Below, in pieces: positions 1,308 to 55,246 of a DNA stretch of 64,000 nucleotides. Location: NCBI GenBank assembly GCA_047495785.1, contig JBLDXI010000004.1:1364001-1428000 (forward strand), written 5' to 3'. The notes below the pieces were generated by a model. The model was not told the origin of the DNA. It saw nothing but the letters and a program-made list of their open reading frames with translations, and did no database searches. The stretch is from Lepidodermella squamata. Taxonomy: Eukaryota; Animalia; Gastrotricha. Each line of letters begins with the position of its first letter. Within the stretch, counting starts at the first letter, position 1. Made by a program: the position numbers and the translations under genes.

Positions 1308-2483
1308 TCACGGCAAACAAGATCCGCGTGACGAATGGCTGCCCGATGTCAACTGCAATTGAAACAAAAAACAGAATTTGAAATTTGAAAATTGTTGGCG
1401 ATCGAAATAGCACGACCTCATTGGCGGCGCATCCTGCTGATATTGGCCGGCAAATTTTAAACTTGTTCGTCGTTTTGTCCATGCAGCGAACGTGCGGCTG
1501 TAAAATTATAGTGAAACGTCACAGTTTCAATTAAAAATGGTGATATCAAATTTTCAAGAAATTTTCAGAAAAATGTGAATTTTCAAAAAATACCAAAAAT
1601 GTGAATTTTCAAAAAATTTCGAAAAAATGTGAATTATCAAACAATTTCTAAAAGAATTGAAATTTTCAAATAATCTCCAAAAATATATAAATTTTCAAAA
1701 TATTTAAAAAAGATCCAAAAAATTGAACTTCCAAAAAATTACCAAAAAATATTTGATTTTTCAAATAATTTCATAAAATATTAGAATTTTAAAATATTTC
1801 CAAAAATATTTAAATTTTCAAAATATCCCAAATAAAATGTTAAATTATTATTGTCTCGATATTGAGAAAATTGATTGATTCATTTTATATAAGTTGAAAA
1901 AAACGTTACTGGCGTTTTACCTGAGCCTCGCGGTTGCGGCACTCGTTGTGATTTTTGCGGAAGCTGTTCGAATTGCGAAAAACGTCACTCTGTTTGGGGA
2001 AACGTTTGAAATTTGATAGCTTTAAAATTTTAAAAGTTGATATCAATACCGGAGCTTCCGTGTCTTTGCAATTCAAGCCAACTGGAATGCAGCGAATTTC
2101 ATCCGTCAAGCGGTTGTAGCACTGAAGAACAGCCTGGAAAATCACAAGAATTTTTCCATAATTGAAATTTAAAATTTAAAATTTGAAAATTTGACCAACC
2201 CCTTCGCGGCACTTCTTAACGCTGGAAATCGGTTGGCCTAGCTTTTTTAAGAAAAACACACAAAATATTAGGATTTATTTAGGGAATTCTCTGAAATTAA
2301 TTTTACGGAATATTCATTCGGCGAGCATGATTGATCATCGATGTAGGGACGGCAATGGGCGAATCGGTCCGTTGACATGGTGAAGCAGCGGATCCACTTG
2401 CGATGAGGCTCGTGATGGCCAGCCTCGCTGAAACTCGCCATTACAGCTATCAAACAAATGACGGCAATCGCACCGACACGCAT
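1308..2483 (-). CDS. Gene A: secreted Cys-rich protein, signal peptide plus one 12-Cys triplet (6 exons, ~166 aa)
   Basis: Spliced by eye on GT-AG introns: MRVGAIAVICLIAVMASFSEA..KWIRCFTMSTDRFAHCRPYIDDQSCSPNEYS|LGQPISSVKKCREG|AVLQCYNRLTDEIRCIPVGLNCKDTEAP|SDVFRNSNSFRKNHNECRNREAQ|PHVRCMDKTTNKFKICRPISAGCAANEV|LTSGSHSSRGSCLP*; AATAAA on the minus strand near 1240. Confidence 0.8.
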
Positions 2484-3245
2484 GATTAATTTTTATGAAA
2501 TTATTCAACTATAGTAAAAAAAATTGGTGATGATTAACAGGCTTTGTAGGATTTTTTTTCAATTCAAGAAAAATATTTCGAGTCGAGCACGCGTTCATTC
2601 AAGCCGTCACGCGTCGCTGAAACCGTGGCCATTTTCAATCGTATTTTCGTCGTTATTTAGGCTTAACTATTTCTGGAATTTTTCTAAACATAAATTCATA
2701 AAAAAATTATAGATATTATAGATATTCGCTAAGTGTACGTCATCGGTCAACGCTGTCGAGTTTGGTTATCGTTTTTAAAAATCAGTGATTTTCCGATAAA
2801 CGTGAATTTTGAAAATTATCACCGAATTTTCGGATATATATCAAAACCATTAAATCTTCTGGATCTAATTATGAATGATTTATTTTTTTGCTAAAATTCG
2901 AATTAATCGACTAATTAATCGAATAATGGAAAAAATCATCGATTTCGAATTTCTGAATTTCTGTTATAGGATGTGGCTATCGATTCTATTTAAGTCTCGC
3001 ATGATAGCTCACTGGATAATGAATTCCGCCTATAGGATTTCAGGCAATTTGCGATGCTGTCAATATTTTACATTGAAATGACTTTTATTCAGCATTTAAA
3101 CTATCATTATTTTATTCCGAAGATTGACGTAGAGCGAAAAATTCACAAAATATTCATTTTCAATCAATCAATATCAATCAATATCAGTCGATTTCATTCA
3201 CTGGAATATAACGATAAGCTGTCCCGTGATTTTTCTCCAATTTGT

Positions 3246-5245
3246 TTACTTGGGAATAACGTTGAAAGCCTCTGTGTCGAAATTTGAAAAAATTAAAATT
3301 TTAATGAAATAATATGAATTCACTTTCGCAGTCGATGAGCGATTCGTACTCTTCGCCGGTTTTCTGGCCTGGCGGGCAGTGAAGCAGAACGGGGCGGCAG
3401 CCGAGGAATTCGTTCGATTTCTCGTCAAAGCACGCGCGATGAGCAGTCTGATCGCACAGAAAATTCGTGAAAATTTATTTTCAGACAAAATTATTTCAAT
3501 ACCGGGGTCTTATCCAAGCAGCGGTTGTAGCTCGCGTTGAAATTGTGATGCTCATCGTCGAAAATTGCACCCTGAAAATGGCAAGAAATTTATTAATTTT
3601 CTTATTCTTATTATTATTAATTTTTTTATTTATTATTATTAAATATCGAATAACCAAGTTTTTACCACTTTTGAAATTTTCTCAGATTTTTTCAAATATA
3701 TTCACAATTTGAATTGAAAAATTATTCTAAAATTATTTCAAAAAATTGATTTAAGTTTATGGTCAATCAATAAAATTTCAATTATTGCTGTTCGATTATT
3801 GGTTATTTTTCAAATATTTTAAGCGTTACCTCGCGCATAGCTTCGGGGCAGGGCTGATCGGCGTTGATGCAAATCGGGGTGATGGGCTTCGACGGCTGTT
3901 GAGCAGGGTGGTAGCAGTACTTGGCAGCCTGAAATTTCGAAAATTTCAAAAATTGAATTTTTTTTAAGAAAATTGTAACTCACTCCAGCTTCGCAGGCTT
4001 TGATATCGGGGAAGGCGAATTCATCAGACTGTTAGAAAATAAATCAAATTAAAAAATTTATTAAACTTTTCGGCAAGTAAATTTTTTTACCGAAATTTCA
4101 GTCGGCAGGCACTCGGAAAATCGGCACTCGGTCATGCGCATCGTTTCAGGGTTGAAGCATCGCAGGGCCATGCCCTTCGCTCCAAGAGTGCCTAAATTAA
4201 ATCGAAAAATTATTTCAACATCAAACCTCAGCGTAAAAATATTTATTTTATATTTTGAAAATAATTCGATAAATTATGATTTTTCCGAACTCGCTATTGT
4301 TCAATTTCAATTTTTTCGAAATTGCTCGAAAAAATTTAATCCTCACCTTCCAAGCAGCTAGCCAAATTAGGATAACGAGCGTGTTCAACCTGAAATTGAA
4401 AAATATTGAAATAATGAGAAATCTAAGTAATTATTTAACCTCTCCAGTTCGAACAAGGCAGCCTGCGTATTCGGGGCGGCACGCTTTGAACTTGTTATCC
4501 ACTGCCGTGTTGCAGCGGAAATAAGGCTGGGAAAAATTTGAATAAAATTTATAAAAATTCTACTGATTTAAAAAAAATTATTCACCATTTTAGCATTGTC
4601 ACGGCAGGCTTCGTAATTTTTGCGGAATCGCGTGTGCTCGTTGAACAAATGAACCTTGAAAATTGTGTTTGAAAAATTTGAAATTTGAAATTTTTCAAAA
4701 TTTCAACTGAGTATTTTTTACCGCGTACTCGCCAGTTTTGCATTCGTAGTCGATGCTGATGCAACGCGATTTCGCTGCCTCGTAATTGTAGCACATTTTC
4801 GCATCCTGAAAAATTGGAATCAATTTGAATTCGATTAAAATTAATTAAAAAATTCAACTCACCCCTCGAACACACTCAACGATGGTCGGGAACGGAAAAT
4901 CGCCCTGAAAAATTCAGATTGATTAGAAATTTCAAAACAAAATTGATAAATTTTCTTTTATTCTATAAATTGTAATTATGAATTACTCACTTATTTTTGA
5001 ATTTTGAAAATTTGATAAAAAATTGAAAAATCCAGGAATTTATTTGAATTGAAATTTATGTTTGAAAAACTTGAAACAGTGATTTTTCCCGTTGAAATGT
5101 TAACCTGGTATTCATCGGTGGAGCAAGAGCGGCGGCAGTGGACGAAATCGTCGTTGTCCTTCATGAAGCAACGGTGCCATTCATCGGCCGAGCTGAGAGC
5201 AGCAACAGCGGAGCAGAGCAGAGCAATCGCAACGGCGGAATTCAT
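3246..5245 (-). CDS. Gene B: secreted Cys-rich protein, signal peptide plus two 12-Cys triplets, no lectin domain (12 exons, ~310 aa)
   Basis: MNSAVAIALLCSAVAALSSA DEWHRCFMKDNDDFVHCRRSCSTDEYQ|GDFPFPTIVECVRG|DAKMCYNYEAAKSRCISIDYECKTGEYA|VHLF..NYEACRDNAKM|PYFRCNTAVDNKFKACRPEYAGC..|..YPNLASCLE|(phase 1)..LRCFNPETMRMTECRFSEC..|..FPDIKACEAG|AAKYCY..|..YNRCLDKTP|TAHRACF..CE|KAFNVIPK*; open frame across canonical introns. Confidence 0.82.
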
Positions 5246-5839: not shown

Positions 5840-6162
5840 GGTTCTATGTCAATTGAGCAAACGAAAATTGAGCAACGAAAATAGAGCAAGGGCTTTTGAG
5901 CAACGATATTAGAGCAAACGAAATTAGAGCAAAACGACACTAGAGCAAATTTTATTTACAATAAATAACAGCTGCAATTAATTATTAAATTTGCTCTAGT
6001 GTCGTTTTGCTCTAATCTCGTTTTGCTCAAAAGTCGTTTTGCTCTAATTTCGTTTGCTCAGAAGTCGTTTTGCTCTAATTTCGTTTGCACAAATATCGTT
6101 GCTCAAAAGCCCTTCCTCTATTTTCGTTGCTCAATTTTCGTTTGCTCAATTGACATAGAACC
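5840..6162. mobile_element. Foldback MITE with long TIRs made of short internal GAGCAA-core repeats
   Basis: Starts ggttctatgtcaattgagcaa, ends ttgctcaattgacatagaacc; tandem gagcaa.cga units mirrored on the other arm; no clear TSD. Confidence 0.75.
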
Positions 6163-7508: not shown

Positions 7509-8460
7509 TTACCAGCTTTTACCAGCCATGGCAGAAATAAGAGACGTTTCAACGACGAAAGGCTCTTGGATGCGAACGCAGTGTTGTTTCGCGGTTTGCG
7601 GGATCGGCTTCACCTCCTCGAGCAACTTTGACAGCATCGGCTCGTTACGGCTAACTTCGTCGTTGCTGCAGTGGAGAACAGTTACTTTCGTTGCCAGTTT
7701 TTCAGCAAGCAAGGCAAATGCAGCGGCATCGCGTACGACGAGATTTTCATTACCCATCATTTCTTTGCGAACTGCTGATTTTACACAGCCTCCAACGCCG
7801 TCCGCGGCACTCTTCCCATGGTAAGAGGCGAAAAAATGCCACTGAAGGCTTTCCAAGAAGAGCTCTCGCACAAGTATACTCAAGCTCCCCAGGAAAAACC
7901 GCTGCTTGAAGTGGGTCTTCGCTCCTTCACTGAAACCGTCGAACTTGCGTCGAGCCGGATAGCGGAGCTTCAAGTGCGACAACACTTTGAGTAGGAAGCA
8001 ATAGGCAGCATTCGAATCGTGAAGCATTCGATCGCTCGCCACAACGTAAGACGCGATTTCAGACCCAACCCAGGCGACGAACGTAAACAAAGTAACCTGT
8101 TGGTGGTTCCAGTGAGCTGACTGGACCTCAGACTAAAAAAATGAATTGGGCAAAGGTACTGACTACTGACATATATAGTTTAACATTTAATACCTGTTGC
8201 TGAAGTGCGAAATTTTCGGCGAAGTCTATCTGAAAACGCATGCAGATTCATTAGAATCAGCGATCAATTGGTTAAATGTGGCCTGCTGGTGGGCCTTGAC
8301 CCAGCAATGAGTCGTAAACGGCGTACATTGCCCGTTTATTTTTTCAAACAGGCACTCCAAGGTCAAAGTTTTTCCAACTTTCTCAGTAGCCTATAAAACC
8401 GAAAGATCAATTGATCATCACTAAGTCAATGTTATAACTAACCTTTGTTGAATACGGTAT
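7509..8460 (-). mobile_element. Degenerate intron-containing DNA transposase fragment, probably Sola-type (DDD), copy 1 (frameshifted)
   Basis: Motifs DFAENF, QSAHW..QVTL, SD..HD, FSEG..HFK (degenerate SDG), WHFFASYHGKSAADGVGG; 1-nt deletion near 8233 relative to copy 2. Superfamily assignment is from memory of motifs. Confidence 0.65.
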
Positions 8461-8786
8461 CTCAGTTTATTTTAAATTTTACTTCTTCATTCAACACACT
8501 TCTCACAACGAATTGTCATATCAAAACGCTCGACAGTCTCATACATATCTCTCGCATAGCTCGTAAGTAATTAAATCGCAAGAGCCGGCTGTCTGGAACC
8601 TGTAAGAGCCGCCGGAGACATATATGAAAACGCAATCATCATATATCGGAAAGATCCACTGCGAAGCGACGAAATTGAAATCCGAGCCATCGTCCCATTT
8701 CATGATGTTGTTTGTCACGGTGAGGGCGATCCAGGCAGTCGCATCCGTCACATTTCCAGCAGCTTGCTGTTCGGCCTCCGACCTTA
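7660..8786. repeat. ~1.13-kb direct duplication, copy 1 (copy 2 at 12430-13557): transposase fragment plus 3' end of the C-type lectin exon
   Basis: Base-by-base match at offset 4770/4771. Confidence 0.92.
8539..8786 (-). pseudogene. 5'-truncated C-type lectin exon, paralog of the gene D last exon
   Basis: ..DATAWIALTVTNNIMKWDDGSDFNFVASQWIFPIYDDCVFI..CDLITYELCERYV*; no upstream exons; breaks at 8786 into the gene C promoter. Confidence 0.8.
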
Positions 8787-8829: not shown

Positions 8830-9092
8830 TATTTTCTTCAAAAATCATAATGGATAATGCTTCAAAACTGCACTCAACCGAGACAAACACGGGCTTGAAC
8901 CCTTCAACACGCGCCGAAAAAGAAACGGACACGTGACACGTTCCATCGCACCACAAGGAGTGTCGCAATAGAAAATATCGAAAACAACAACAGCAACAAC
9001 GCACCGTCATTCACCATTCATTCGATAAAATTTTTACACAATTCATATCGTGAATTTTCAGTTGATTTTTTTTACAAGGCTCATTCGATCAG
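8830..9092 (+). promoter_or_regulatory. Upstream region of gene C with blocks conserved upstream of gene E (23830-24175, minus) and the relic at 39944-40200
   Basis: Collinear blocks aacacggrcttgaac, cacgcg, gccgaaaawgaaacg, cgtgacac shared by C and E (partly in the relic); gctcattyga.cag immediately before the ATG of C and E. Confidence 0.5.
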
Positions 9093-11716
9093 ATGTTTTC
9101 GTATCACTGTGCTCTGCTGCTAACCCTATTGCTGGCGCCAAGTGACCCGGCTTCGGGTAAAGAGTTGAACTGGGTTCGCTGCTTCTCACAGTTCAGCAAC
9201 CGATTCACCAACTGCGTACCAGCTGCCAATGGCTGTAATCCACTCACCGAATACCAGGTTTGCCACGATTTACGTGCATGCAGTAACATGATGATTGTTG
9301 AATTGCTCACCAACTAGTGGGGCGGCATTTTTCGAACAACTGGCGTCTGCAACACTGGCGTTAGTTTTACTCTTCAGTTTAAACTTGTTAATTAACGCCC
9401 TGTTTTTTCTATAGAATGCCCGAATGTGCTACAAATACGAGGCTCTTACTCCGTTTTGTGTACCTGGTAACATTGGCTGTAACAACCCTGGCAATATGAA
9501 TGTACGTCGAAAGCTCATGTTATTTCCCTTTCGTCGGATGTTCTATGACTTTTGCGTTTCAGACGTTCTGGTTCAACGATCAAAATGCGACGTTGAGTTT
9601 GAAATACAACCTCAACGAATGCGATAAACAACGAGCTGTTTTCGAAGTAAGAACTTCCAAACTGCTGTTGTCAGTGCTCATGATTAGCTTTTGGTACATC
9701 CCTTTATACTTTATAGAAATCGTCGAAATTCCGGCGTTGCACGTCGAACAGCGTCATCAAAACCTGCGTTCCCGATCCTTTCACTTGCCCTGAAAACTGG
9801 GTTAGTGCTTTGAGCTTTCCTATTTGAATTAAAAAAATCAATTGAATCGCTCAATTACTGATGGTGGAACGTGAAAATGCTCAGTTCATGAGGTAAATAA
9901 TAGCTAATATTCTATATTATTCCTCTTCTAGATCACTGAATCGACGATTTACTCAGATTTACCGTCGTGCATCAACGCCACGGGTGAGTCAAATATTTAA
10001 ATCGGATATTTGAAAAGGCTAAGATGACATTTCAATCTAAATATGTAATGACGGGCAATATTTTTCGACAAATTAAATGTTCAGCGAATTCAGGTATTTC
10101 CGTTAAATCAAATTAATCAATGATAGTAAGAAAATTCCGAGGATTTTCATTCCTGCATTACAAAAGTTGATCAACTATTGGGACAACTTGTAATTAACGC
10201 CGGAGAATTTTGCAACACGAAATTTAAATTAACACGAGTAGTGTTTTTCAATCGCAGTCTCTGTTCCGATCAGCGAGAAGCCGCACATCCGCTGTTTCGA
10301 TTCGACAACAAGCAAATTCACAAACTGCCGACCTCAAAGCACTGGCTGCTTGGCTAACAATGAGACTCAGCAATATTCGACTAATGTTTTCATCAACTAT
10401 CAAAGCTGCCTGCTCGGAGTAAGTCTCTTCTAATTTACCCGCATTTGATGTCTATAATTTCATTTTTGAACAGAACGCGGTTTCATGCAAAGATTCGTCT
10501 AACCGAAGTTCATGCTACGCCGCCTGCCCTCGAGACCTAACCCAGGTGAAACTTGGTTATTGAACATTCACGGATCAAAGTTTCTATGAGTGATTCTAAA
10601 ACAGGTTAAACTCTTCTCGGACTCGCAATCTTTTCAGCTGAACCACGGCAATTGCATCGATGAGATATCGCCCAAGGTGAGTTCGCATCAACTTGTTTTA
10701 AATCATGAATGCCGCCAGCTTGTTGCAAGTTCAATTTAAAGTACATACATAGTGCCTATTTTAAGCATGCGTCTGATGGTATGCAACACGGCAATCAGTT
10801 TAGCTTCAAGATTTCCCGGCTTCATTCGGACAACCCAATAAACGGAAAGCTATGCTTACCTTGGATGTTCAAATGGCCTTTAAATTTTCAATTGCTAAAC
10901 GCTGAAAGATCTCTTAAGAGAATGGATAGTCTCTTGGGACATTTCAATGTGTTCAATACTTTCGGACCCTACCGTTTCACCCTAACTGCGCTGCTTAATG
11001 CAATGGCGTTTTATTCACGAAATTACGGTGCTTTAGTTTTTGTTTAATTGAAAATCAGCAACAAGAACTTCATTAATTTTGCGAGTCTAACTGGAGGGAA
11101 AGAGGGGTGTGGCGTGAGGGAGCTCTGTATTATCCCCTGGCTTTATTACTATCACTTAAATAATTCTAGATAACAAAATATGTTTCTTACTGTCCCATGC
11201 CATTTTTAGCCGACTGGGTATTTCCGCTGCGTCGACAACAGCGGTGGAGCAGTTCATTGCGTCAATGCGTCCACAGGCTGCAATGCGGCAACTCAGCTTC
11301 GAATTCCGGCTAATGTGGTCTATCCGGACGAGAACACTTGCCCGAATGCGACCAAGAAGTTAAAGTTGGTGTATTATTTGGGTGACAGAGCTGCCAGCGC
11401 GGCGAAATGCGCCGAAGACAATGCTTCGTTGGCGACGATTTGGTCAGACGATGAGCTGGCTGCTGCTAAACTAGCGCTGGAGGGGAGGGGGGTTTCTGAG
11501 GCTTGGATCGGTCTCACTCGCCAAAACGGCGAATTCCGAGGGGTTGATGGCTCAAGTTTCACTTACGTTGCATCGCAGTGGGCTGGTGGTAACGGCGACT
11601 GTGCTTATCTCACATATCGATTCTCAAGTTCTCAAAACGTCCCAGTCGATGGTTATTACTATATGCTCGTTGATTGTAGTTACATTGCAAGCTTTGTCTT
11701 ATGCGAGTCGTTTTAG
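9093..11716 (+). CDS. Gene C: signal peptide, two 12-Cys triplets and a C-terminal C-type lectin domain (10 exons, ~440 aa)
   Basis: MFSYHCALLLTLLLA..WVRCFSQFSNRFTNCVPAANGCNPLTEYQ|WGGIFRTTGVCNTG|NARMCYKYEALTPFCVPGNIGC..|TFWF..NEC..|..RRCTSNSVIKTCVPDPFTCPENW|..YSDLPSCINAT|..PHIRCFDSTTSKFTNCRP..|NAVSC..|VKLF..NC..|PTGYFRCV.. then CTLD (KCAEDNASLATI, AWIGL, DGS, DCAYL, DC..FVLCE). Confidence 0.85.
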
Positions 11717-12237
11717 TGGTTCACTTTACGAACAATGCCTTGTGAGATTGTAAGAGGCCGAAGTAAAATAATAATATGTGGGGAGATTACCTATATTCTT
11801 CTGACGCGTGACAAGTTGATTGATTTTCATCAATGGCCAAGATCGACGGCTACTAAAACTATGATAGAACATACAATTCGCGAATATTTATGTGAAGATC
11901 ACAGTTTCACGTGAATAAGGACGCAAACAAAAATTACTGAAACGCCAGGGTTTGGCACCAGAATTTCTGACATCGTCTGATTTCGATCCCGTTCGATCAT
12001 GCAAGATCAGTGAACTTCATCAATTGCATGCGAAAAATTAATTAATCCGCATTAATGTATCTTGCGAGATATTTTGGCGGAATCGGTATCTCGGATTGGG
12101 ATATCGGTTAAACATTTTTATTCACAAAATTACGGCAACGACATAAAATGACTAAAATGATTATTTTTTATTTTACACCCTCTTTTCAGGCATTGTGATG
12201 TTAATTTGATAGAAAAAGAGAGAGCCTTAGCTTGGGC

Positions 12238-12429
12238 TTAGAGGGAGGCTGACGGCAGGCGATCGGCTTCAGAGACCGACAGATCGGTCGCGAACAACCT
12301 GCTATTGCCCAAAAATCCGTAACTTTCGATGCTATTAAACACTAATTGCCATTCATCCCGATTTCCGCTGGTTTTAGTTCCGCAATTTTGCGAATTCCAG
12401 TGCGCCGCATTAACAAGGTCGACGTACGA
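12238..12429 (-). pseudogene. Possible orphan C-terminal fragment of a LamG/pentraxin-like exon
   Basis: Open frame ..SYGFLGNSRLFATDLSVSEADRLPSASL* resembles the G-x-h-xx-hhF-xxx-LS-xx-E end of LamG domains; joined directly to transposase copy 2. Confidence 0.3.
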
Positions 12430-13231
12430 TCGTTGCTGCAGTGGAGAACAGTTACTTTCGTTGCCAGTTTTTCAGCAAGCAAGGCAAATGCAGCGGCATC
12501 GCGTACGACGAGATTTTCATTACCCATCATTTCTTTGCGAACTGCTGATTTTACACAGCCTCCAACGCCGTCCGCGGCACTCTTCCCATGGTAAGAGGCG
12601 AAAAAATGCCACTGAAGGCTTTCCAAGAAGAGCTCTCGCACAAGTATACTCAAGCTCCCCAGGAAAAACCGCTGCTTGAAGTGGGTCTTCGCTCCTTCAC
12701 TGAAACCGTCGAACTTGCGTCGAGCCGGATAGCGGAGCTTCAAGTGCGACAACACTTTGAGTAGGAAGCAATAGGCAGCATTCGAATCGTGAAGCATTCG
12801 ATCGCTCGCCACAACGTAAGACGCGATTTCAGACCCAACCCAGGCGACGAACGTAAACAAAGTAACCTGTTGGTGGTTCCAGTGAGCTGACTGGACCTCA
12901 GACTAAAAAAATGAATTGGGCAAAGGTACTGACTACTGACATATATAGTTTAACATTTAATACCTGTTGCTGAAGTGCGAAATTTTCGGCGAAGTCTATC
13001 TGAAAAACGCATGCAGATTCATTAGAATCAGCGATCAATTGGTTAAATGTGGCCTGCTGGTGGGCCTTGACCCAGCAATGAGTCGTAAACGGCGTACATT
13101 GCCCGTTTATTTTTTCAAACAGGCACTCCAAGGTCAAAGTTTTTCCAACTTTCTCAGTAGCCTATAAAACCGAAAGATCAATTGATCATCACTAAGTCAA
13201 TGTTATAACTAACCTTTGTTGAATACGGTAT
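12430..13231 (-). mobile_element. Sola-like transposase fragment, copy 2
   Basis: ORFs 12898-13137 and 12342-12860 separated by a short GT-AG intron; same motifs as copy 1, frame intact at DFAENF. Confidence 0.65.
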
Positions 13232-13309
13232 CTCAGTTTATTTTAAATTTTACTTCTTCATTCAACACTCTTCTCACAACGATTTGTCACATCAAAACGC
13301 TCGACAGTC

Positions 13310-15801
13310 TCATACATATCTCTCGCATAGCTCGTAAGTAATTAAATCGCAAGAGCCGGCTGTCTGGAACTTGTAAGAGCCGCCGTAGACATTTATGAAA
13401 ACGCAACCATCGTTTATCGGAAAGGACCATTGCGAAGCGACGAAATTGAAATCCGAGCCATCGTCCCATTTCATGATGTTGTTGGTCACGGTGAGGGCGA
13501 TCCAGGCGGTCGCATCCGTTACATTTCCAGCAGCTTGCAGTTCGGCCTCAGACCTTACCGTCGCCAGGGCGCCATCGTTTGCGGCGCATCTCTGTGCGGC
13601 TCCGGCCCAGTTGGTTCCTGATTCGACTAGGAAGAACTTCTTGGTCACAGCCAGGCAGGTGTTCTCGTCCGGATATGTGACATTAGCTGGTAGACGAAGC
13701 TGGGTTGCCGCATCGCAGCCTGGCGACTCCATTACGCATCGAACCGAGTTATCGCTCTTCGCCACGCAGCGGTGATACTTGGAACCCTGCAATTTTTACA
13801 TGAAATTAGTCACTTCTAGGCAAGCCCTTTCAGGGTAGGGTAAGGGGTATGGGACATCTGAGGGACTGAAAATTCGACAGGATTAAAACAGCCTTAAACA
13901 GAGAAAATCTATACGAAGCCAATGCATAATGACAGCTCTGATTTTTAAAAGTTCTCAAATCGGTAAAGGGATATCGTGAATTCATCACCAAATTATTCCT
14001 ATCACTTCCCGCAATATTAAGAGCCTAACCCTAATCCTAACCCTAATCCTAATTCTAACCCTAATCCTAACCCTAACCCTAACCCTAACCAGTTGAAAAC
14101 CAAATAAATTTGTTAGGTATTGAATTACATGAAATTTGGTACCGCCGTAAGATTTTCCCATCGGTAAAATTCAGATAGAGATTCAGAATCAAAATAGTCT
14201 AAAAATTGTGTCACTTCAACAAAGTGGAGATTGAACTATCTCTCGGCAAAGCGATGATACAGATTCCCACGCTATTATACTAGCCCATTTTATGTTCAAG
14301 TTTCAGCCCCCTGACTCTTACAAGCCGGGGTTGGAATTTACGGCGATGCGGTAAGTATTAGAAAATGTGCAGACCTGAGACATCTGAGCTTGTAAGCAGT
14401 CAGCATAGTTGCCGGAAAAGTCTGACTTCGCCCGGAAAATTGTTACCTGAAAAGCATTAGTTTTCAAAAACACTACTTATAAGATAGACCTGTCAATTCA
14501 TCCCGAAAAATAATAATTCGGCACAATAATGGAATTTACTATCCAAGCTATTGATAGAACCAGTTTTGATTAAATCAGGTTTAGCTTACCACTGTCATAG
14601 GCGACGGGCACGTGTTTCGGCAAACCATTCCATCAGACGTCGAGCATAAGGCTGCTGGCTGGAATATTTCATAAACTACTTTTCCAAGAAAACAATTATT
14701 GCAAAATAAACAAACGCCTGCAATGCAGTGATATCTGTCGATGTAAGTTCCGCTACTGTAGGTCTAAAGATGGAAAGGACCAATTAATAAAAACGTGTTT
14801 CCGAACTTTACAAGCAGCGTAACCCGAGTCATCGAGGCTGCATCGCAAGGCGTCGATTGGCAGCCAGCGAAAGACCGATTGCTTTGCAGAAAGCATCGGT
14901 TGAAGGGCACGAAATCAGCATTATTACGGACAACTATAAACAGAAATAACTTCGCTCAGGAACCTTAACGGCTAAAATGGATTCTGAAGTGATTTATTCT
15001 CATTCGATAAATGAGCTATTAGTGTTAAGTATGAAACCAACTTTTCTCCTGTGCCATGCACAGTTGCATCGTCGCATGACTGCCAACCGGGGTCTGCAAT
15101 GAAAAAATCGAGAGCAGCGAATGGTTCAAGGATTTACTTTTATTGCGAAACTCACCCCGCTATTCGGGCACGAGCCGTTGATCGGAATGCACGTCCGTTG
15201 GCCGTTTTGGTCACAGACTGTTGCCTGAATACTCTGATTCAAAGAAAACAAGACAATAGAATGGTCAGCATTAGATAACGCTCGAATCGAACCAAGAAAT
15301 TTTTGATCGTTGATCGGCACAGATCGTACTGCGATCCGAAAACGTCTCCGAGAAATTCGGCCGTCTAGGTTGTGGGAATAAGACTAGGCGTAAGAATCGC
15401 ATGTGACATCAACAGACAAACCATAACTTCGTCATTTTTATCACAGCCAAGATTACGAGGGATACATCGCATGTTGATCGTTTTGAAGTTGAAGCAACTT
15501 CTAGCCGCCTGAAAATCAAATTAAAATGCGAAATAAGTTGAAAAATAATGAAAAACTCACGCCTGATTTGCAACTTAACAACGAGTTCAACTTGAGCCCA
15601 AGCTTTATTGAAAACAGTAAAAATTAGAGCAGAAAATCTAACTTTTGAAAAAGGGCTTGCCTGAACATCATCGAGGAACGTACAGTTCTCTTTACAACCT
15701 GCAAAGGCGTCATTTAAACGGGAGAAACATCGCTTGTACTCTTGTGTACTCGCTAATGCTGCCAGGCTCAGGAAGAGAAAGATTCGAATGATATCAGTCA
15801 T
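13310..15801 (-). CDS. Gene D: signal peptide, two 12-Cys triplets and a C-type lectin domain (11 exons; first intron GC-AG)
   Basis: MTDIIRIFLFLSLAALASTQEYKRCFSRLNDAFAGCKENCTFLDDVQ|LGLKLNSLLSCKSG|AARSCFNFKTINMRCIPRNLGC..|..QYDLCRS..|..VCDQNGQRTCIPINGSCPNSG|..QLCMAQEK|..NRCFLQSNRSFAGC..|..YIDRYHCIAG|PAALC..|..NYADCLQ..|GSKYHRCV.. CTLD (WAGAAQRC, LATVRS, AWIAL, WDDGS, GCV, C..ELCE). Confidence 0.85.
13968..14159. mobile_element. MULE-type MITE carrying telomere-like (CCCTAA/CCTAAT)n, in the last intron of gene D
   Basis: Perfect 9-bp TSD atcggtaaa (13959-13967, 14160-14168); termini gggata..attttccc; relatives at 31518-35583 (split) and 51485-51711. Confidence 0.8.
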
Positions 15802-16649: not shown

Positions 16650-17039
16650 TTAAGCAGGCCTAGTCAACCCTGGATAATTTAGCGATAGTAGCCAAATGTT
16701 TGAATTTTCAAAACGCTAGCAGTTGAGCAGTCGCTAAAAACAGAGTGATAAGTGATCATTACAGAACATTTCACTGAGAGATTAGAACGCTTATGCCGAA
16801 TTTCGCCAAATAACGATCCAAGTTGCCTACCTTTTGATATTTTTCGAATTTCGAGCCTTTCCAACAATCGCCTTGGATTGGCCAATCACGCAATCCGAAA
16901 AACGGGGCGACTAACAAAGTGTTTTCATCATTCGGTAGAGCTCGAAAACGTCGTAGCTAAACAAATGAAGCTCGTATCAGTTTTTTTACTTCAACTTGCA
17001 ACACTCACAATAAAGTTTCGGAACAAAAATCTCCGTCTC

Positions 17040-39943: not shown

Positions 39944-41305
39944 GTGATGAAAAATCAGCTGAAAGTTTACCTACGCTATGAAATTTGTAAAAATTGTTAT
40001 GAATCAAATATGTAATGACGGTGCGATTCAACGTGTGTGTGGTTTATTGCGCCACTATTTGGTGTGATGAAATTAAGCACGCTCTCACAGTCACGCAGAA
40101 GTCTCAACAATCTGAGCAACGGCGTTTTCTTTTCGGGCTTCTATTAAACAACTGCGCAGTAGCTTGGTCGCGTGTCGAAGAGGTCACTGCCAAGTCCATG
40201 TCGGAGTTATATAATGTCGGAGTTTTATTCGAACTATTATTTTGAACACATACAAGCCGTTTTCACAAAATAGAACGATAATTATGAATTATGATAAAGC
40301 ATGTGCGCGATTAACTAATAAAAACCAGCTTATTGAAATTTCCAACATTTTCCGACAGCTTTTTCCTGTAAAATCAGTGATATTTTTTAGCCAAATGAAG
40401 ATGTGTAAAATTAATGAAGCCTTCTGATAAATCTCAATGGAAGTTGACAATATTTTATGATGTTACTTCAAAACTCTGAAACCGACTTTTCAAGGCTCCC
40501 ACATTACGCTTGGCCGATGAATTCTGGCATGAATCCGTGTCGAAAGTAAAATTTCGGAAAATACGGGCATTTCACGCTCATCGTATACGAAAATATATGG
40601 TATTTCGTTGTATATTTTCGTTGGCAGGGTTTTCCGCAAAACAGCCAGCTATGGTCAAGCTGGGAGCTCAGATCAGATCTATTGAAAACTGACTGAAAAC
40701 TGTGCGGGAATTTATTCCATCACGTTTTATGTGAAATCGAAATAAAATGGATTATTAGAGATTATTAGATTTCTTGAATTTTCTGATTTTTTCTTTTCTT
40801 CATTATAATGACCTGGGATATTGGTGATATCCTTTCGTAACCTCAGGTGTATGTATTGCGATTTTTTATTTTGAATTCATCAGAAAATTTACTGATTTGT
40901 TATGCACAATGGCAGGAAAATGAAAAATCAGGTAGAAGTGACCCCAAAATAATATATTATGGCGGCTTCAAATTGGTGGAAGTTTCGTCGCTAAATTCCA
41001 GTTCGCAATTGGCACTTGGCACACTTCCAACATAAAATGTGTCTGTCCCAATATAGTGCAGGTCATTTTTTCGAGTTGCGTAATACATTTTCTTGATCGT
41101 GCCCCCGTTTTTAGCAATAAAAATACTACGCATTTTCCACGGCGATTTGAATGAAACTCTAAACACGTGTTGCAGAAATGCTTAGCCTCGAGTCGCGCGA
41201 AATAAGCCACCCGTTTTAAAAATTTGTAATCTGCTCGTCATTGAATTCATTTCGCTCGAATTGATTCAATAAACGTAGCTTTTTTAGAAAATTAAATGTC
41301 GAGCT

Positions 41306-42510
41306 ATGACTTGCTACTTTGCGTTATTGGTAATTGTCGTATTGGCTGCGGGACCATTAGCAACAATGCAAGATTAGGTTCGCTGCTTCTCGCAGTACGA
41401 CAACAGGTTTTCAAGGACTGCTACCCAGCTACGCCCGGCTGCAACCCTCTAACCGAATTTATGGTAATTTCATATGATTATAAATTACGAGCCCTTATCG
41501 ATTTCCTATTTTCAGTGGGCTCCCAAATGGCTGCGTGTCGGTCCTTGCACTAATGGCGTGAGTCGTTTTGCTCAATTTGATCCGAAATTAATTTGAAGTA
41601 TGAAATTTGCTGATTTTTTTGCAGAACAATCAAATGTATTACGAAGTACGAAGCGCTCACTCCCATGCGTCCCTGGCAACGTCGGCTGCGATCGGCAACG
41701 CGAAATTAACGTGAGTATAGCGAGGCGATTGTAATATCGAAATTTCGCATAAATGTTATTGTTGCATCCAGCTGTTCTGGTTCAGTAACTTCACGCTTAA
41801 GGCCAGCCAGAGAGAGTGTGAGAAAATTATGAGGGCTGTATTTGCGGGGAGTAATTTCCTGTCTTCGCTTCTATTATAGTTTGGTTTCTCTTGAACAGAA
41901 TCTGAAATTCAGGCAAAGTACCGCAAGTGGCGTCGTCAGAACCTGCGTTCCAGATTCATACACAGATTTTGCATTTTGTCAAAACAAAACAGCCGTGGCC
42001 GATCCGTTGAGGTCGCGAGGAGCAAGCCGAGCAATATCAACATGTTGAAATCGTTTACAAGCTTCACTAATTTCCGATCTAGCGATTACAGTGATAAAGA
42101 ATTAGGTATTTTACATAGTAAATGATGTAGTGCTGACTGATTAGCGAAGTCCGATCAAAATAAGCTGACAATTGCGCCTGAAGAACACTGAAAAGTTCGA
42201 AAAGTTCGATAAAACCCCCAAAGCGTTCAAAGTTATTTCAAATAGTCTGTAACTTACGCTCAAGCCGCAGAGAAGAGCGCAGCTTACAGCAACGACTTAG
42301 CGACCTTCAGCCATTCTGGTGAATTTGCAAACTTTAAAAGCCTGTTTTATCTGCAGCGATGAGCGGTTGCTGGCAATATTTGGCTGGGCACCCAGCGGCG
42401 GACTAACGAACAGCATCAGGTGGGATGGAGATGGCTCGATGGCTCTCTGGATATTTTAATTTATCTTGGACCTAAACTGGCTGATGATTGTGCTACGCTA
42501 TACGCTATCT
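41306..42510 (+). pseudogene. Pseudogene of the gene C/E type (triplet exons plus C-type lectin remnant)
   Basis: MTCYFALLVIVVLAAGPLATMQD*VRCFSQYDNRF/KDCYPATPGCNPLTEFM|WAPKWLRVGPCTNG|..KYEALTP/CVPGNVGC..|LFWF..EC..|..RTCVPDSY; later NIWLG..GWRWLDGS..DDCATL; stop and frameshifts. Confidence 0.75.
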
Positions 42511-47591: not shown

Positions 47592-50500
47592 TCATAATCG
47601 AAACGGAGGCGTGCAATACATCGTCAGCGCTTGGGCGACCACCAAATTCGGGAAGCGATAGCCCCGATAGATATCGCAAATAGGACTAAGCGCTGCACCG
47701 GCCGAGTCATCGCCGACTCGGGAGAGGACTTCGTAACTCACCGCACTGATTAAATCAACAGTAATATACGAAACCGTAGGACTTATTTTCGATACGTAAA
47801 TCGACTGGCCAATGTCGATTAGAAACCAAAAATCAGTGCTGTACCCCCCGGCGCTGCCTGATGGGTAAAATGAGCCATCAGTCATGTTGGCGTTGAGTGA
47901 AGCCGGAAAGGTCGATGTGACTTTCTTGAACAGAGCGTAATTCGTCCCAGTTTCAGAGCTAGCTTCAACTTTACAAATCAAAATGATGGCCTCGCGAGAA
48001 ATAGATATCACGTTGACGTAACGGCCCGATACGGGTGGGAAACACGGCACGGGCACTCTAGCATCATAAGGAACGTCAGGGTCGCCAGCATTGCAGTTCG
48101 TCAATGCTGCATCAGCGTACCAGGTCGGGACGCTGTTGGAAACAGCGACTCTCATGTCTGTAATGGCGTATTCAACATCGGCGTAGGTGCAGCCCTTGAA
48201 GCTAAACCGTCCTATCGGCTGTAGTGTGTAATCGTCAACGTACAGTCGGACGGCGAATGCAACTAGAGCTGGTTTAAGGTAGTTGACGAAAGGCTCAGAA
48301 TTCGGGCCACTGGAAGGTCCATCGAAAATTCTAATTCTCGATCCATTGTTTCCGGTATAAGCTACCCATTTGCTACTGTCGCCCTTTAGCCGAAATGCCA
48401 AGTGATACTTTTCAATCCAGGCCGCCAGAGTAGCGCTGGATTGAACCGCGACAATGTTGATGATTTTCAGCTCGTTGAATGTTATCTGAAAATACGGCTG
48501 ACGCTCTGTGGCCAGCGGGATCCAGTCTGAGTTGCCGATGTCATTCCTGCTCAAATCGCTAGGAGTTGTTGCACTCGAAGCAGTTTCTACGGATTCGCTA
48601 TCGTAAAGCTCAATGTTGCAAAATTGATCTAAAGAGTTTCGAAACATTATCATGGCATCATTATAAGTAATTTTATAATCTTACGTGCGCAGCCTCGAAC
48701 TCGCCATTTCAAGCAGATTTGGCCGCTCCACGATTCAGGATGGAATCTGAGATGACGGGCTATGATGTGAGGCCTTAGGAAGCTCCACTGAGTCGATGTT
48801 GAATCGTTGTTTGCAACGAAAATCTATAAAACATTTATTTCATTTTTCGAGCAAGAAATATGTCGGGCTACTTTTGTTGACGATAGGCCGATGGCTCGAT
48901 TGTAAAATGTTTTGAAGGTTACGTTATTAGTGCTGTAGGACAATCGATAGGTTCGGACGAAGCAGTTGTTCACCGAATCGCCAGATGTCGCAATCGATGT
49001 AACGATTTTCTGCTCGCCAAAGTCCAAAGTAAGAAATTCCGTGTTAGACAAGGTCGCTGGAGTCCAAGCACAAGCCATAGAGCCCCGAATATCATCCGAT
49101 CCAGGGCAAACGCCGTAGGGCGGGGAAGCAGAGGAGTAGTTTGAACTGTAAGTCCAGGCCGATGTCGATGACAGGTCGGACTCGCAAACGTGACCCTCCA
49201 CTGGAAGTGCAATAGTTTTGATATCCTCACTACAACTATTATACTTTCTATCGCTTACATGTATTCGGCGTGGGAATTTGGTTAGCAAGCTCCATGGCTA
49301 GGAGTGAATCTGCTGGGCTTTGGTAGATTGCTAGCCAAGTCATCAATCCTGTAAAGTACGCGCTGCTCGAGACATCCTAAATATGATGAATTATGTTTTG
49401 ATGCTGAAATGCCCCTTACAAAAAATTTGATTTTATATATGCTCAAAAATACTAGAAGCGGCTCTCTATCTTATGATACTGCTTTTTATTCTAGCAAAAA
49501 AGAGCCCGAAAAATCTTAGAATCAAATACAAATTGAATATATCCCAATTAATTGTTCATTTAATCCCAATTAATTGAATATAACTTTTGAAAATTTACAT
49601 CGTACACAATCACTGTCAGAAGATATTATTAGCTCCCTATCAGTTAGTATTGTCTGTGGCCTTTCGCCAGCCCTCATTCCCAGGTTGAACATGCCAGGTT
49701 GAACTCAGGTTTCCCTATAACTTGAGCCTATTTCTAGCTTGAATTTTCGGAAAATAATATGATGTTAAAAATGTAGACCTACCCTTCCTATGACGAGGCT
49801 ATTCGTGTCACCAGGAATGCAGTCGCTGAAGCTTTGCGTTGTCCCGGCCACGCCATCACGGTAGCCAGTGATTCGATGACCGCCTGCTGTGAAATCGACG
49901 TTCAAAATCAGATGCTGCCAGCGATTAACAGCCGCGTTGCCTGTATCGTTCGCAGTCTGCACTCCACCGCAATTCACCGTGTAGGATATCGACATGTCCG
50001 TCGAGTTGTAGAGCAGCTGGAGAACGGTCGATGTACCCATGGCCAGCTGGAATATTGGCTGGCTGCCAGCTGTGAAATTTTGAAACAGCATTGCGTGGAT
50101 TGCTACGGTATAGGATGGCAGAGGGGCAGATCGGTTGAAGCCGACCTTGTAGCTACTGAGGTATGAAGCCACGTTCAGTGAATTAGCGGCGGTCGGTGAA
50201 AATCGAAACACCTCCGTGTCACCCGTCGACCAAGGGAACGCAGCTCCACGAAGGGACGACCCAGCCGCAGTCAGCACATCACTTGTACCATCCAATGTTG
50301 ACAGGCCGTTGTTGTAGTCGAAGGGTGTTAACAGGACGGCTTTCATTGTGCTGGTTAGCGGGCATCGCCTCGAGGAATGGGCGAATCTTCGCGTGAACAC
50401 AACTGCGTTATACACTTGCACACACGCATAGCTCGTCGGCTGGCTGTTGGCGCCTCCGATTCTGAAAAACGTCGCATCAGTTTGTATTCCAACACCAGCA

Positions 50501-53500
50501 CAGCGATTTGACCACGAAGCAACGAATTCGCCCTCTTGGATCAGATAGGCGGTAGCCGTCCCTAATCTGTATTGAAATCCAACATAGTTCCACTGATTCA
50601 GCAACAGTTTTATCGGCGAAGTTAGCGTGAATGGCGATGTTGCACCTTTGCAAAGAGCGACAAGTTGAAGGTAGCCGGTCGAGGATGCCCTCAATCCCAC
50701 TGCAAAGGCTGTAGAATTCAACGCATCCGTCCAGCCCATCAACAATCCGCCAAAACTAGCCGGTTTGAAATGAAACAGGAGAGTGACTGACCGTAGATAG
50801 ACGGTGAAGCGGCTATTATCAGAGTTTACCCAGAGATAATCCATTTGAGAATTGAGCTTCAGCGCGCTAAATTAATAGAAAAAAAACAACTGCTATTTTG
50901 TCGACGCAAGTTTAGAATTACGTGTTACTGTAGCTGAGCACATTGTCGCACGTCGGGTTTCCAACCGCTCTGAAAGCACTGCTCGGTGTGATAAGATCAG
51001 CTAGGTTGCAGGCTAACGGATACAGCACAGCAGGCGTCGGGGCTGCAAATTTTGATTAAATTTGAGCCAAAGTGCCTTTGAGTAAGAACTCACGAGTCCA
51101 AGGAGCTTGGGCACTTTGATCAATCTCAGCGTTGTCCAAAGCCCGTTTGTATATCTGGATGTGCGATAGCCTCCCGGTCCATGCACCTCCCACCACGAGG
51201 TAAGCATTTACTTTGACTGCAGTCGATGTAAAGCAGCTGACCGCATAGATCCCACGCATGATGCGATCGATGAAAGCACGAGCAATACCCGCGCGGCAGT
51301 CGAATGTCACAGCGGTGTGAACCCAGCGATTTTTATCGATGATAACATAACCCTGGGTTTTAGGGAAACTCACCGAGTCGTTGCATGCCCGAGATTGATC
51401 CACTAGAAATGTCCCGGTATCGTTAATCCAAATTCGCATACACATACTAGGGAAAAGATAAATATCTTGTCAATAGACAAGCGTGGGATACTGTGAATTC
51501 ATCACCAACTCATTGAATTTAGTACCGAAAATCATTGAATTTTGTACCAAGTTTTTCCAATCAGTTTAATCGAAGTCACAAATTTAAAGACTCAGAGTCT
51601 AACCCGAACCCGAACCCTAACCCTAACTCTAACCTTAACAAGCTAAATAACGGAATAAACTCTTTAGGTATTGAATTAAATGAAATTTTGTGCCGCATAA
51701 AGATTTTCTCCAAAAGAGCCCATACTGTGGCTTACTTTCCTTGAGTTGAGCTGACCAAATTGAGAATGCCGCTCGTGTGCCAAACCCATGCTGAAAATGT
51801 CCAGCCATTGTTTTTGTCAGCAGCCAAATTATCCATCGGTAGAAACATTTTGCCGGAGCCTGACCACGCAAGGGCTGACAGAGCTCGCCCAGTAACGCCC
51901 AAGCCGAATGTCAGCCCGGTTGAGTAGACGCCGTTGTTGCCATTGCCGCTCAGATCGTCAGCTCGGCGCAAGATATCAAGAGGCCAGTAGCCATCTGGGA
52001 CGAGTGTGAAGGCCGGGTCGAGTTGCGGGGTAGTAATTTCTACAGATGTGATAGTTTTCGTCTCACCCAAATCAATTGTAACGTAAGACCGCTGGAAAGG
52101 ATCGCCACCACCTGATCGCAGCTTCGTGCAGTTTGTGAAACTTCTCTCCCGGATTACACGGTCGCCAGTCAAAACTGAGGCACCAGGCAGCCCAAGCAAG
52201 GCATCAGTCGCTAGATCATACGCTTTGGCTATAGGAGCTTTGAAGGCAATATTCGGTGTATACCTTGGGATAGTTCTACAGCCTAGCAGCTCGATTTTGT
52301 AACAAGGCTTCGTGCCAGAGAATGAAATCTGCTCAATCCTGAAGTATTGAGCAACAATCGGCCTCGGGAAGACAACCGTTGCGATGTTCAACGCGTCGAC
52401 ATTACCCGTTAAAGCAACTTGGCCATTATTGTCGTGCAGCTCAGCCCAGTTATCACTCGACCCAGCCTTGTAGCTCAAGGTGAACACTTGGACCCAAGAA
52501 TTAAGCATGGCACAGCCCTGAATTTGAACAGCAGTGACCACGGTCTGTTTCCTCAGATCGATTGTCAATGGCATGCTGTTAGCATACGCAGCCAAGCCCC
52601 AATTCAGCCGTGAGTAATACGGCTTTGCTACTGCAACAATTTCGGTCGAAAGTTGCGAGTCTTCAATTTCATTCGTTTCCATGCCCAGCGGCTCGAAGCA
52701 CTGAGCTGGAGAGCCCTTGACTGCCACTTTCGCTTTGCTTACAACACCCGTTCTATTCTCGAATGTGTTTGTAAATCTGACATGCTTTGTAAGAACTGGT
52801 CGGAAAGGCGTGAAAATCGTAGTTTTGCCGCTGATAGGATTCCAGAATCTGTTCTCACCGTGGCCATTATCAATCGATTGAAAGGCCAAACCATCAAAAC
52901 TCCACTCTAATTTCACCTTTAGTAAACAGTCGAACCTGCAGTAAAACTGGAATTCCGTCATCCAAACGAAGCGCTGGAGATCGATTTTAAACCAAGTACC
53001 AACGGGAGGATTGTTGGCGAACCCGAAATAATGCGGATGATTTTCGTAGAGATGGCCAAGCGGCGGCTTCTCGTCGCTAAAAGCAGAGCTCGAAGAGTAA
53101 CCCAAATCGGTTACGTAAGAATTATCAATGTCAACAATTTCACCGCCTGAAACTTGCAGCAACAAGCTAGGAGCTGTCCACGCTGACTTTAGTATTGCAT
53201 CCCATGTTGCTGTTAAAGCGCAAGATCTCGTCGATGAGCACTGGCGCGATTTCTTCATCAGACCCTGCGATGCCACTGAGAATGATGTTGCGTCTTCATT
53301 TGCTACGACCTGGGCAATTGCCGAGCCAGGCAAATCAAAGCTCCATAGGTCGCAGGTTTGGTTAGTCGCCGTGAATTGACCAGACCTGCAGAGATCGTTC
53401 GAATTACACGAAGCCATACAGGTTACGGCTGATTGAACAGAGCTTAGATTTCCAACAAGGTGGATCGAGAGGTTGTAGCCGGCCTTAACTGGGCCGAAGG

Positions 53501-53579
53501 CCATTCCGGGGTAGATGTTGTAGTGATAACCACCAGCAGCAACGCTGTGGCATAGCGCTGCCGTTAGAAGGAAAATCAT
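47592..53579 (-). CDS. Large secreted multi-lectin: PAN/Apple, 2x F5/8C, 3x LamG-like, 2x F5/8C, fucolectin-like tail (~8 exons, ~1,700 aa)
   Basis: Signal MIFLLTAALCHSVAA; PAN C.xxC..C.S..F....CDL; discoidin motifs CFEPLGME..IEDSQL, TIDLRKQTVVTAVQIQG, KIELLGC, LTLDFGEQKIVTSIATSG; LamG YWPLD..DLSGNGNNG..WTFSAW..WVHTAVTF..IYKRAL; C.P..GRYV.V....L..VE and NYALFK.V (F-type lectin-like); no TM segment seen. Confidence 0.82.
51485..51711. mobile_element. Third copy of the telomere-repeat MITE, in intron 1 of the multi-lectin gene
   Basis: gggata.tgtgaattcatcaccaa ... (aacccg/aaccct)n ... taggtattgaatta.atgaaattt..taagatttt. Confidence 0.7.
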
Positions 53580-54999
53580 AGATTTTATATTATTTTGATA
53601 ATGTAATCAGAGAGCAAACCCGACTCAACATTGATTTTTTCACAATTTTTGTGCGTGATGTTATTTTTCTGAACTCAGTTGAAGGCATTGTAGGTATTAA
53701 TTGGATACAGCTTTCACACTGCTTCGCATCAACACATTCTTGTAGACATCTGAAATTCTACGGCGTAGAAATAAATAATTTAGTGGCCAAAAAGCTTGCA
53801 CACGTTTTCTCGCTGCTAAGGTAAAGTTTTTATGAAAAAATCAAGCGTTCACCGATTGATTTAATTCCGTTTTCTCAGCTTGACGATGACCGAAATTTGT
53901 CAAAGGTAACAACGAAAATGCATTCGGATATCAATCCAAGTTTAAGTCTTCAGAGTTCTTTCAGTTTGGCTGCGATTCCCAACTACAAATTGTGTAATTT
54001 CAACTGATCGCGGCATTTTCGTCACTACTTTTTTCGCCCCTTCCCATTTAAACGATAATTTCTTGAAAGTTTACCGAAGACTGTCTACTGTTGAAAATCG
54101 CTTAACATTATTCCCCATGGTTACCAAAAATAATAACAATAATAATAATAATGGTTTTATTTAGTCCTCCTCTCGATTAAGCATCTATACCGTAAAAACG
54201 GTTTTGAGGAGGGCGAAGGCAGGCGATAGATGGAAATCACCCACCCCCACAGTTGAAGATTCTACTTTTTCCAAAAAATTCATAATCATTCATTGAGTCA
54301 ACAATGTTGCGCCATTCGATTTTATCAAAAGATAGTAATTCAGTCAATTGCAGATCAGGAATAATTTTAATTTCAAATTTATTTTCTTTTATACCAAAAA
54401 TATGGGAGGCAAAACAATATTGAGAGTCGTACTTTAGTACTGATTGAATGGAAAAAGTCTGTTAGAAATTAGCTGGCATAGTCTCCTTGCAGCTGAGATA
54501 AGATAAATATTGATCGATACATGCAATTTATACATGTAATGCCGCCTATTGTAGGGGAGAAAATGGACTAAATAGCGAGTTTGATATGCTTCATTTTATT
54601 CCATTCACCTTAGAAGAGCTCGTAATAAATAATATTGTTTATCATGAACTCAAAAACTGTCTTTTGTCTGCGGTCATGAAACCAAAACACCGTTTTGCTT
54701 TGCGACCTGAATTTTCGCCTTACACCGCAAATGAACTTTGACCATGAGACGGGCTATCGTTAAAAAATCGTAATTTTTGGCGATAACTTTGGATTATCCA
54801 GGCAAGAGGCTACTGTTTATATCCGGAACAAAAGCGTGCGGCGCGTCAACACCTAAAATTAGAAATTAATTGTCTGTCACCGTTTATCGAAAAAAATCGA
54901 CCTAATATCTAGTTCATTTCATTTATTCATTCATTTAATTAATTTCAATTTATCAGTGATATTTCCTTAGTTGAAATTGTGCATTATTATTATTGACGA

Positions 55000-55246
55000 A
55001 TGAATCATACCTGTAATTTGTTTATGATTTGCGTTGTGATCGTTGGGCTAGCAAACAGCAGCAAGCCGTTGAATTGGGCGCGATGCTTCTCTTAGCTAAG
55101 CAACAGATACACGTCTTGCGCACCGGCTTCTGATGCCTGTAATCCACTCACTGAATATTCGGTACGTCAAATTTTTGAAAAATAATTGTTCATCCATTTA
55201 TACTATGATCTCTGTTTTATTTGTATCACTTCGACAGTTGGGTCTA
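55000..55246 (+). pseudogene. Relic of exon 1 (and the start of exon 2) of the gene C/E type
   Basis: MNHTCNLFMICVVIVGLANSSKPLNWARCFS*LSNRYTSCAPASDACNPLTEYS|LG; in-frame stop, then unrelated sequence. Confidence 0.75.

Follow-up and report, generated by a model that had tools for sequence, protein, structure and literature searches.

Expanded families of proteins with C-type lectin-like domains (CTLDs) are known from invertebrates. The clec genes of Caenorhabditis elegans, as generally described, encode a signal peptide and a C-terminal CTLD, exist in hundreds of tandem copies, and in many cases lack the canonical sugar-site residues. In the collectins and in DC-SIGN/DC-SIGNR, the C-terminal CTLD follows a spacer, and the oligomerising necks of these lectins consist of collagen or coiled-coil repeats. 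Extracellular modules such as EGF, Sushi/CCP, kringle, and FN are disulfide-rich, have phase-1 introns at their borders, and are combined with varied partners. Class 1-1 symmetry of this kind is Patthy's exon-shuffling rule for mobile extracellular modules. The present analysis deals with a tandem array of six genes (A to F) in the gastrotrich Lepidodermella squamata, located on a stretch of 64,000 nucleotides (assembly GCA_047495785.1, contig JBLDXI010000004.1, positions 1,364,001 to 1,428,000 of the forward strand) that is referred to below as the window. The array is probably part of a very large family of secreted proteins, specific to the lineage, in which a stalk of four-Cys sub-modules, arranged in triplets, carries a C-terminal binding head.

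The gene models were assembled by hand from open reading frame (ORF) fragments, AG/GT splice sites, and reading frames. Genes A to F contain 1, 2, 2, 2, 2, and 4 triplets, respectively, which gives a total of 13 triplets and 37 sub-modules. When cut at exon borders, 36 of the 37 sub-modules have exactly four Cys with the spacing C-x7-14-C-x3-8-C-x15-26-C, and their order is A-B-C in every triplet. Most are spread over two exons of 39–107 nt each, and single-exon sub-modules are found as the A of triplet 2 in genes C and E and as the last C in genes B, C, D, and E. Introns inside the triplets are all phase 0. Phase-1 introns are confined to triplet ends, in genes B, C, D, and E and thrice in gene F, with one more before the first sub-module exon of gene F. 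An initial annotation of the window, made by reading the letters, had claimed 13 triplets of four-Cys sub-modules in A-B-C order with this same division of intron phases, and the hand models and the phases computed from them agree with it. The unit is class 1-1, with phase-1 introns at both borders, and the border in gene C was verified in RNA-like contigs. Because phase-1 introns sit only at its borders, the triplet is taken as the mobile unit, and its duplication and shuffling among the genes is supported.

The three sub-module types can be told apart across genes. Hidden Markov models (HMMs) built with the tested gene and its close paralogue left out assigned 32 of the 37 sub-modules to the correct type (13/13 for A, 11/12 for B, and 8/12 for C), compared to about 12 expected by chance. 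In profile-profile comparisons (hhalign), A matched C with E 1e-7, a clear homology, and B matched C more weakly with 2e-4. A, B, and C derive from a single unit by divergence, and the triplet is old compared with the gene duplications. The units follow each other closely. From the last Cys of A to the first of B the gap is 7 residues in 11/11 triplets; it is 10–15 residues from B to C and 7–18 from C to the next A, and there is no room for flexible linkers.

Two public sequencing runs contain sequence from the window. Of the sampled words, run X2 (2024) contains 70% and run X1 (2015, recorded only as 'RNA?') 16%, about the exon share; X2 behaves as DNA. Contigs of both runs were aligned to positions 9050–15049. 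The X1 contigs skip eight introns of gene C with GT..AG ends (9359|9415, 9501|9563, 9646|9717, 9800|9932, 9983|10258, 10418|10474, 10545|10605, and 10676|11210), and the junction of exons 1 and 2 is represented by matching loose ends, 9257 to 9318. The splices assumed in the initial annotation are thus borne out at all nine junctions of gene C in X1, and no such joint was found in the DNA run X2. The start of the B2 exon in triplet 2 of gene C was set at 10605 by the X1 data. The joint 9983|10258 lies between the exon with the second half of the C sub-module of triplet 1 (9932–9983, plus strand), which is followed by the phase-1 intron dividing the two triplets, and the exon with the whole 53-residue A sub-module of triplet 2 (10258–10418, plus strand), which was the reference for searches and folding. 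Gene C is transcribed and spliced as modelled, including the phase-1 border between its triplets. For gene D, one junction (14824|14763) was seen in X1 at low depth.

In genes C, D, and E the head is a genuine CTLD. Their last exons matched Pfam Lectin_C (PF00059) with 37.4, 33.1, and 32.2 bits, respectively, against a cutoff of 22.6. In gene C this is the exon at 11210–11716 (plus strand), in which the last C sub-module is fused to the CTLD and which was studied with Pfam, AlphaFold2, and Foldseek. Foldseek matched the model of this exon to collectin-11, NKG2D, LLT1, and CD23 with E 3e-6 to 3e-5, and 366 matches were obtained at E <= 0.001. In the alignment of such exons (A2), the framework Cys C66, C130, C155, and C164 are invariant or nearly so, and the WIGL-type core reads W-I/V-G/A-L. 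The two heads of gene F look LamG/ConA-like (PF13385, PF02210), a likeness seen in language-model features alone. The nearest clusters by ESM features are Laminin_G_3; the exon of 317 aa scored 0.97 and that of 176 aa 0.92, values that serve as a lead only. Pfam gave nothing at E <= 1 for either exon, and a PDB sequence search with the 317-aa exon gave nothing.

Rates of change were compared over 22 paralogous exons that each encode a C sub-module and a CTLD, using the ratio of nonsynonymous to synonymous substitution rates (dN/dS). The median dN/dS was 0.24 in the stalk part and 0.40 in the CTLD, and in pairs with a CTLD dS < 0.6 the values were 0.32 and 0.83, respectively. Sliding windows over the CTLD gave 0.1–0.25 in the framework and 0.7–0.9 in faster patches. 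The heads evolve faster than the stalks.

The family extends far beyond the window. A whole-genome search with three exon types (121-Mb genome, 151 contigs) gave at least 150 scored copies per exon type, with 558 candidates for the fused A exon, 285 for the B first half, and 452 for the C sub-module plus CTLD. Nearly all matches are stop-free, and they are concentrated on contigs C4, C64, C36, C42, and C85. The triplet adjoins unrelated partners, including a CTLD, two tandem CTLDs, LamG-like exons, and a kringle, and one triplet stands after a CTLD. The kringle case is a neighbouring non-lectin gene (locus L101, 6565–8150, plus strand; C4:1352564-1354149), in which one A-B-C triplet comes after a kringle exon (PF00051, E 2e-6). 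Two members on contig C36 (L093, 345–1244, and L094, 289–1194, both minus strand) encode two tandem CTLDs together with a C sub-module in one 300-aa exon. The CTLDs of these two loci have the remnants GRPGNE/GEPGGE at the EPN position and LNDHLC at the WND position of the sugar site. Among the loci inspected, which had long open frames near family exons, no intron-less copy with a whole triplet was found. The long open frames were rejected as intron-less triplets, as they are short introns read through in frame or two-CTLD exons.

Relatives of the sub-module were looked for in several libraries, with single sub-modules or single exons as queries. Pfam searches with 38 sub-modules at E <= 10 showed no recurrent family, none being matched by more than two members (best E 0.028), and the one-exon C sub-module of gene B had no match at E <= 1. 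The profile from alignment A1, which combines 34 sub-modules of type A with 4 of type C, found nothing among PDB sequences (best E 0.068), and as a HMMER profile it had 0 matches at E <= 0.001 among 1.84 billion cluster-representative proteins. Searching the ESM Atlas by features of the A exon gave no usable match, and scans of JGI metagenomes, one for alignment A2 and one for the A exon, gave no relative. The unit was called unrecognised in the initial annotation, and it has remained so in all of these collections. A word-index protein search with the 160-aa last exon of gene D returned zero matches. Since this was blank even for a CTLD exon, the species is evidently absent from those protein collections. 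The L. squamata genome paper makes no mention of lectins, cysteine or gene families (PMC11660948), and a literature search for gastrotrich and C-type lectin gave nothing relevant. On these comparisons the four-Cys unit is put forward as a previously undescribed mini-domain.

One alternative as to its origin is that the sub-module is not new but descends, with strong divergence, from a known family of small disulfide-rich domains, for example as an atypical four-Cys Kazal/FIM-like domain or a PAN-type hairpin. One of the 38 members had a weak Kazal_2 match (E 0.03), and small Cys-rich domains are commonly missed by sequence and Foldseek searches. This origin is nevertheless considered very unlikely, given that no family recurs over the 38 members scanned and that the profile was blank both in PDB sequences and in the 1.84 billion proteins. 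The sub-module also has neither the six Cys of the Kazal pattern nor a significant match to a Kazal/FIM module. AlphaFold2 modelled the 53-residue A exon, from 38 aligned sequences, with a mean predicted local distance difference test (pLDDT) of 94.9 and a predicted template modelling score (pTM) of 0.74, as a beta-hairpin (residues 9–14 and 20–25), short strands, and a C-terminal helix (47–52). Foldseek found no match for this model in the PDB at E <= 0.001, and a shape search of the ESM Atlas returned the MbtH topology with a template modelling (TM) score of 0.63. MbtH-like proteins (PF03621) differ in being bacterial cytosolic partners of non-ribosomal peptide synthetases with no Cys and 7–19% identity in the aligned rows, and the likeness to the modelled sub-module is one of topology only, within the noise range of the tool.

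The same models bear on the proposal in the initial annotation that the triplet is one compact pseudo-threefold domain of about 130 residues and 12 Cys, in which the sub-modules do not fold independently. The duplication unit is indeed the triplet, with phase-1 borders only there, the order is invariably A-B-C, and the position-specific sequence types are kept across genes; in addition, the constant gap of 7 residues between A and B suggests a fixed A-B interface and allows a rigid higher-order unit. Duplication history alone can account for the order and the phase, however, and one sub-module was predicted to fold alone, with its own four Cys and at the high pLDDT given above. Independently folding sub-modules were named in the initial annotation as a refuting outcome, and measured against this the model speaks for separate mini-domains. 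The exon with the C sub-module and CTLD (alignment A2) was modelled with a pLDDT of 91.4 and a pTM of 0.80, and the C sub-module was again a hairpin. The high pTM suggests that this sub-module may be held in a fixed orientation to the CTLD head, and the last C sub-module would then pack on the CTLD without needing A and B. A co-folding prediction of A with the C sub-module scored 0.00, a 'no answer' that counts neither way. Of the 12-Cys triplet as first proposed, the shuffled unit stands on its phase borders, order, and types, whereas the single 130-residue domain is disfavoured by the folding of the lone sub-module and is regarded as unlikely.

The reading preferred here, a stalk of self-contained four-Cys units with a C-terminal binding head, would give a simple protein plan. 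A signal peptide would be followed by mini-domains of about 45 residues, each presumably with two disulfides, and then by the head. With disulfide beads abutting so tightly, the spacer could be stiff and resistant to proteases, and it could hold a fast-evolving head at a distance. The proteins might then serve in recognition or adhesion, either in solution or bound to a matrix, with microbes, food particles, or the cuticle or mucus of the animal itself as targets. Extracellular recognition or adhesion is inferred to be the likeliest role. Several observations weigh against parts of this reading. Gene A, taken as a full triplet in the initial annotation, is missing the second half-exon of its A sub-module, which leaves 3 Cys there and a leftover exon out of frame, and the odd Cys number may reflect decay. 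The RNA support is confined to gene C and one gene D junction, in a run with no firmer label than 'RNA?'. The fold predictions are at the level of the single sub-module and of the C sub-module plus CTLD exon. The lineage-specific character of the family amounts to 'not found', as the searched libraries appear to contain no proteome from the phylum. The EPN/QPD and WND motifs of Ca2+ site 2 are absent from genes C, D, and E as well as from their close paralogues, with YYY, YKF or LYY at the WND position. Since these sugar-site motifs are missing, glycan binding is not implied, and the lectin heads of the initial annotation hold for the CTLD fold and not for the sugar site; remnants of such motifs (GEPG-N, ND) were seen only in divergent relatives elsewhere. 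Finally, no sliding window over the CTLD had dN/dS > 1, and the proportion of synonymous differences (pS) was 0.24–0.78, with synonymous sites near saturation. Positive selection is therefore not demonstrated, and the diversifying system suggested at first finds no backing in these rates.

Some of these points also favour a mainly structural role, in which the family would serve the cuticle, scales, mucus, or the adhesive matrix of the duo-glands and not a recognition repertoire. Repetitive disulfide-rich stalks and high copy number suit a secreted matrix or glue, the CTLDs of the window are without sugar-site motifs, and the k-mer depth of the gene C contigs in X1 is fairly high, though this is a poor measure of expression. 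On the other hand, the heads vary between copies and evolve faster than the stalks, which is more typical of recognition families, and the family consists of hundreds of distinct genes instead of a few highly expressed ones. A structural role is thus seen as possible, but as the less probable of the two. A more far-reaching version of the recognition role would make the triplet a new 12-Cys super-module of a novel mini-fold, and the several hundred genes, with their quickly changing CTLD and LamG-like heads, a diversified gastrotrich-specific, innate-immune-like recognition repertoire on the scale of nematode CLEC or snail FREP; this is distinctly improbable. The probable reading remains that of a tandem array within a very large secreted family with a four-Cys stalk and a C-terminal head.

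Within the window, genes A to E have hydrophobic N-termini of the signal-peptide type, and no C-terminal anchor was read from any of the models. Gene A (1308–2483, minus strand) encodes 152 aa in 5 exons, with a signal peptide and the one triplet; its hand model has canonical splice sites and all of its introns are phase 0. Gene B (3301–5245, minus strand; 308 aa, 11 exons) has a signal peptide and two triplets, a whole C sub-module as its last exon, and its sole phase-1 intron after exon 6 (4347). Gene C (9093–11716, plus strand; 441 aa, 10 exons) and gene D (13310–15801, minus strand; 413 aa, 11 exons) each have a signal peptide, two triplets, and a CTLD. By its splice-site reading, the intron at exon 1 of gene D (15660–15661, minus strand) is probably GC-AG (cag|gcaagc) instead of GT-AG. 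Gene E (20827–23829, minus strand; 438 aa, 10 exons), also with two triplets and a CTLD, is a paralogue of gene C. A GIY-YIG ORF (PF01541, E 1e-5) at 22762–23148 (minus strand) lies in its intron 3 and possibly belongs to a Penelope-like element. Between genes D and E, on the opposite strand to both, is a gene for a ligand-gated channel of the nicotinic-receptor type (PF02931, PF02932; 18138–20705, plus strand).

Gene F runs from about 39477 down to 25141 (minus strand), with four triplets followed by the two LamG-like exons. In the hand model, the triplets lie at 39477–36160, with the last C sub-module at 29507–29330, and the LamG-like exons are at 28848–29375 (176 aa) and 25144–26094 (317 aa). 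The model is partial, as the ATG exon was not located and the B1 exon of triplet 4 (~36093) is provisional. The joint 'caa g|gt' that had been read at 29330 is probably no splice site but plain coding sequence, as the reading frame continues without a stop for 176 aa into the LamG-like ORF. An intron of about 6.4 kb divides the B from the C sub-module of triplet 4, and it contains MULE transposase ORFs (PF10551; 33016–35396, plus strand) with a SWIM-like Cys motif seen by eye.

Remnants of the family are scattered over the window. A duplication of 1128 bp with 98.4% identity (7660–8786 and 12430–13557, by self-BLAST) left a relic at 8539–8786 (minus strand), which by self-BLAST and its ORF is a copy of the 3' part of the gene D CTLD exon. 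The duplication also carries a 193-aa ORF (7512–8090) with no Pfam match. At 16986–17395 (minus strand), a decayed exon of the kind that joins a C sub-module to a CTLD was recognised from its ORF and a weak C-HMM match at 17342–17395. Remnants of an A-like and a C-like exon without the first Cys are found at 41296–42048 (plus strand), where the ORFs were picked by eye and are sub-threshold in the HMM scan, and a lone A-type first half-exon at 55099–55176 (plus strand) has an A-HMM match with an independent E-value of 1e-4. The locus is in flux, with duplication, transposon insertions, and relics. A large gene at 47595–53579 (minus strand) has PAN, several F5/8 type C, and Laminin_G_3 exons and encodes a secreted binding protein unrelated to the four-Cys family; zero sub-modules were found in it by the HMM scan, though it lies inside the range first given for the family.

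The four-Cys unit would be a new extracellular mini-domain that could be entered in Pfam, and it comes from a phylum whose proteins are hardly annotated. The triplet also illustrates exon shuffling cleanly, with a mobile unit made up of three mini-domains, a higher-order repeat, and not of a single domain. Several hundred exon copies in a 121-Mb genome point to strong lineage-specific selection on the secreted recognition or adhesion proteins of gastrotrichs. Because most of the exons are only 39–107 nt, annotation based on ORFs or homology will miss or fragment the family.

Compared with the systems described at the outset, the gastrotrich array shares with the clec families the signal peptide, the C-terminal CTLD, the high number of tandem copies, and the lack of canonical sugar-site residues. 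It differs from them in that the CTLD is placed on a stalk of four-Cys units in threes without a Pfam match, and in that the C sub-module and the CTLD are encoded in one exon. Like the class 1-1 modules, the triplet is disulfide-rich, extracellular by its plan, bordered by phase-1 introns, and joined to varied partners, but the shuffled unit here consists of three mini-domains and is cut internally by phase-0 introns into very short exons. No sequence or fold match of the sub-module to EGF, Sushi/CCP, kringle, or FN modules was found with Pfam, Foldseek, or shape searches. With the collectins and DC-SIGN/DC-SIGNR the array has in common a spacer before the C-terminal CTLD, and stalk-plus-domain lectins of this kind rank near the top in the structural matching of the head. 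The necks of those lectins oligomerise through collagen or coiled-coil repeats, whereas the gastrotrich stalk is a predicted row of disulfide beads, known here from sequence and models. Overall, the stalk unit represents a new building block in a familiar protein architecture and not a new kind of biology.

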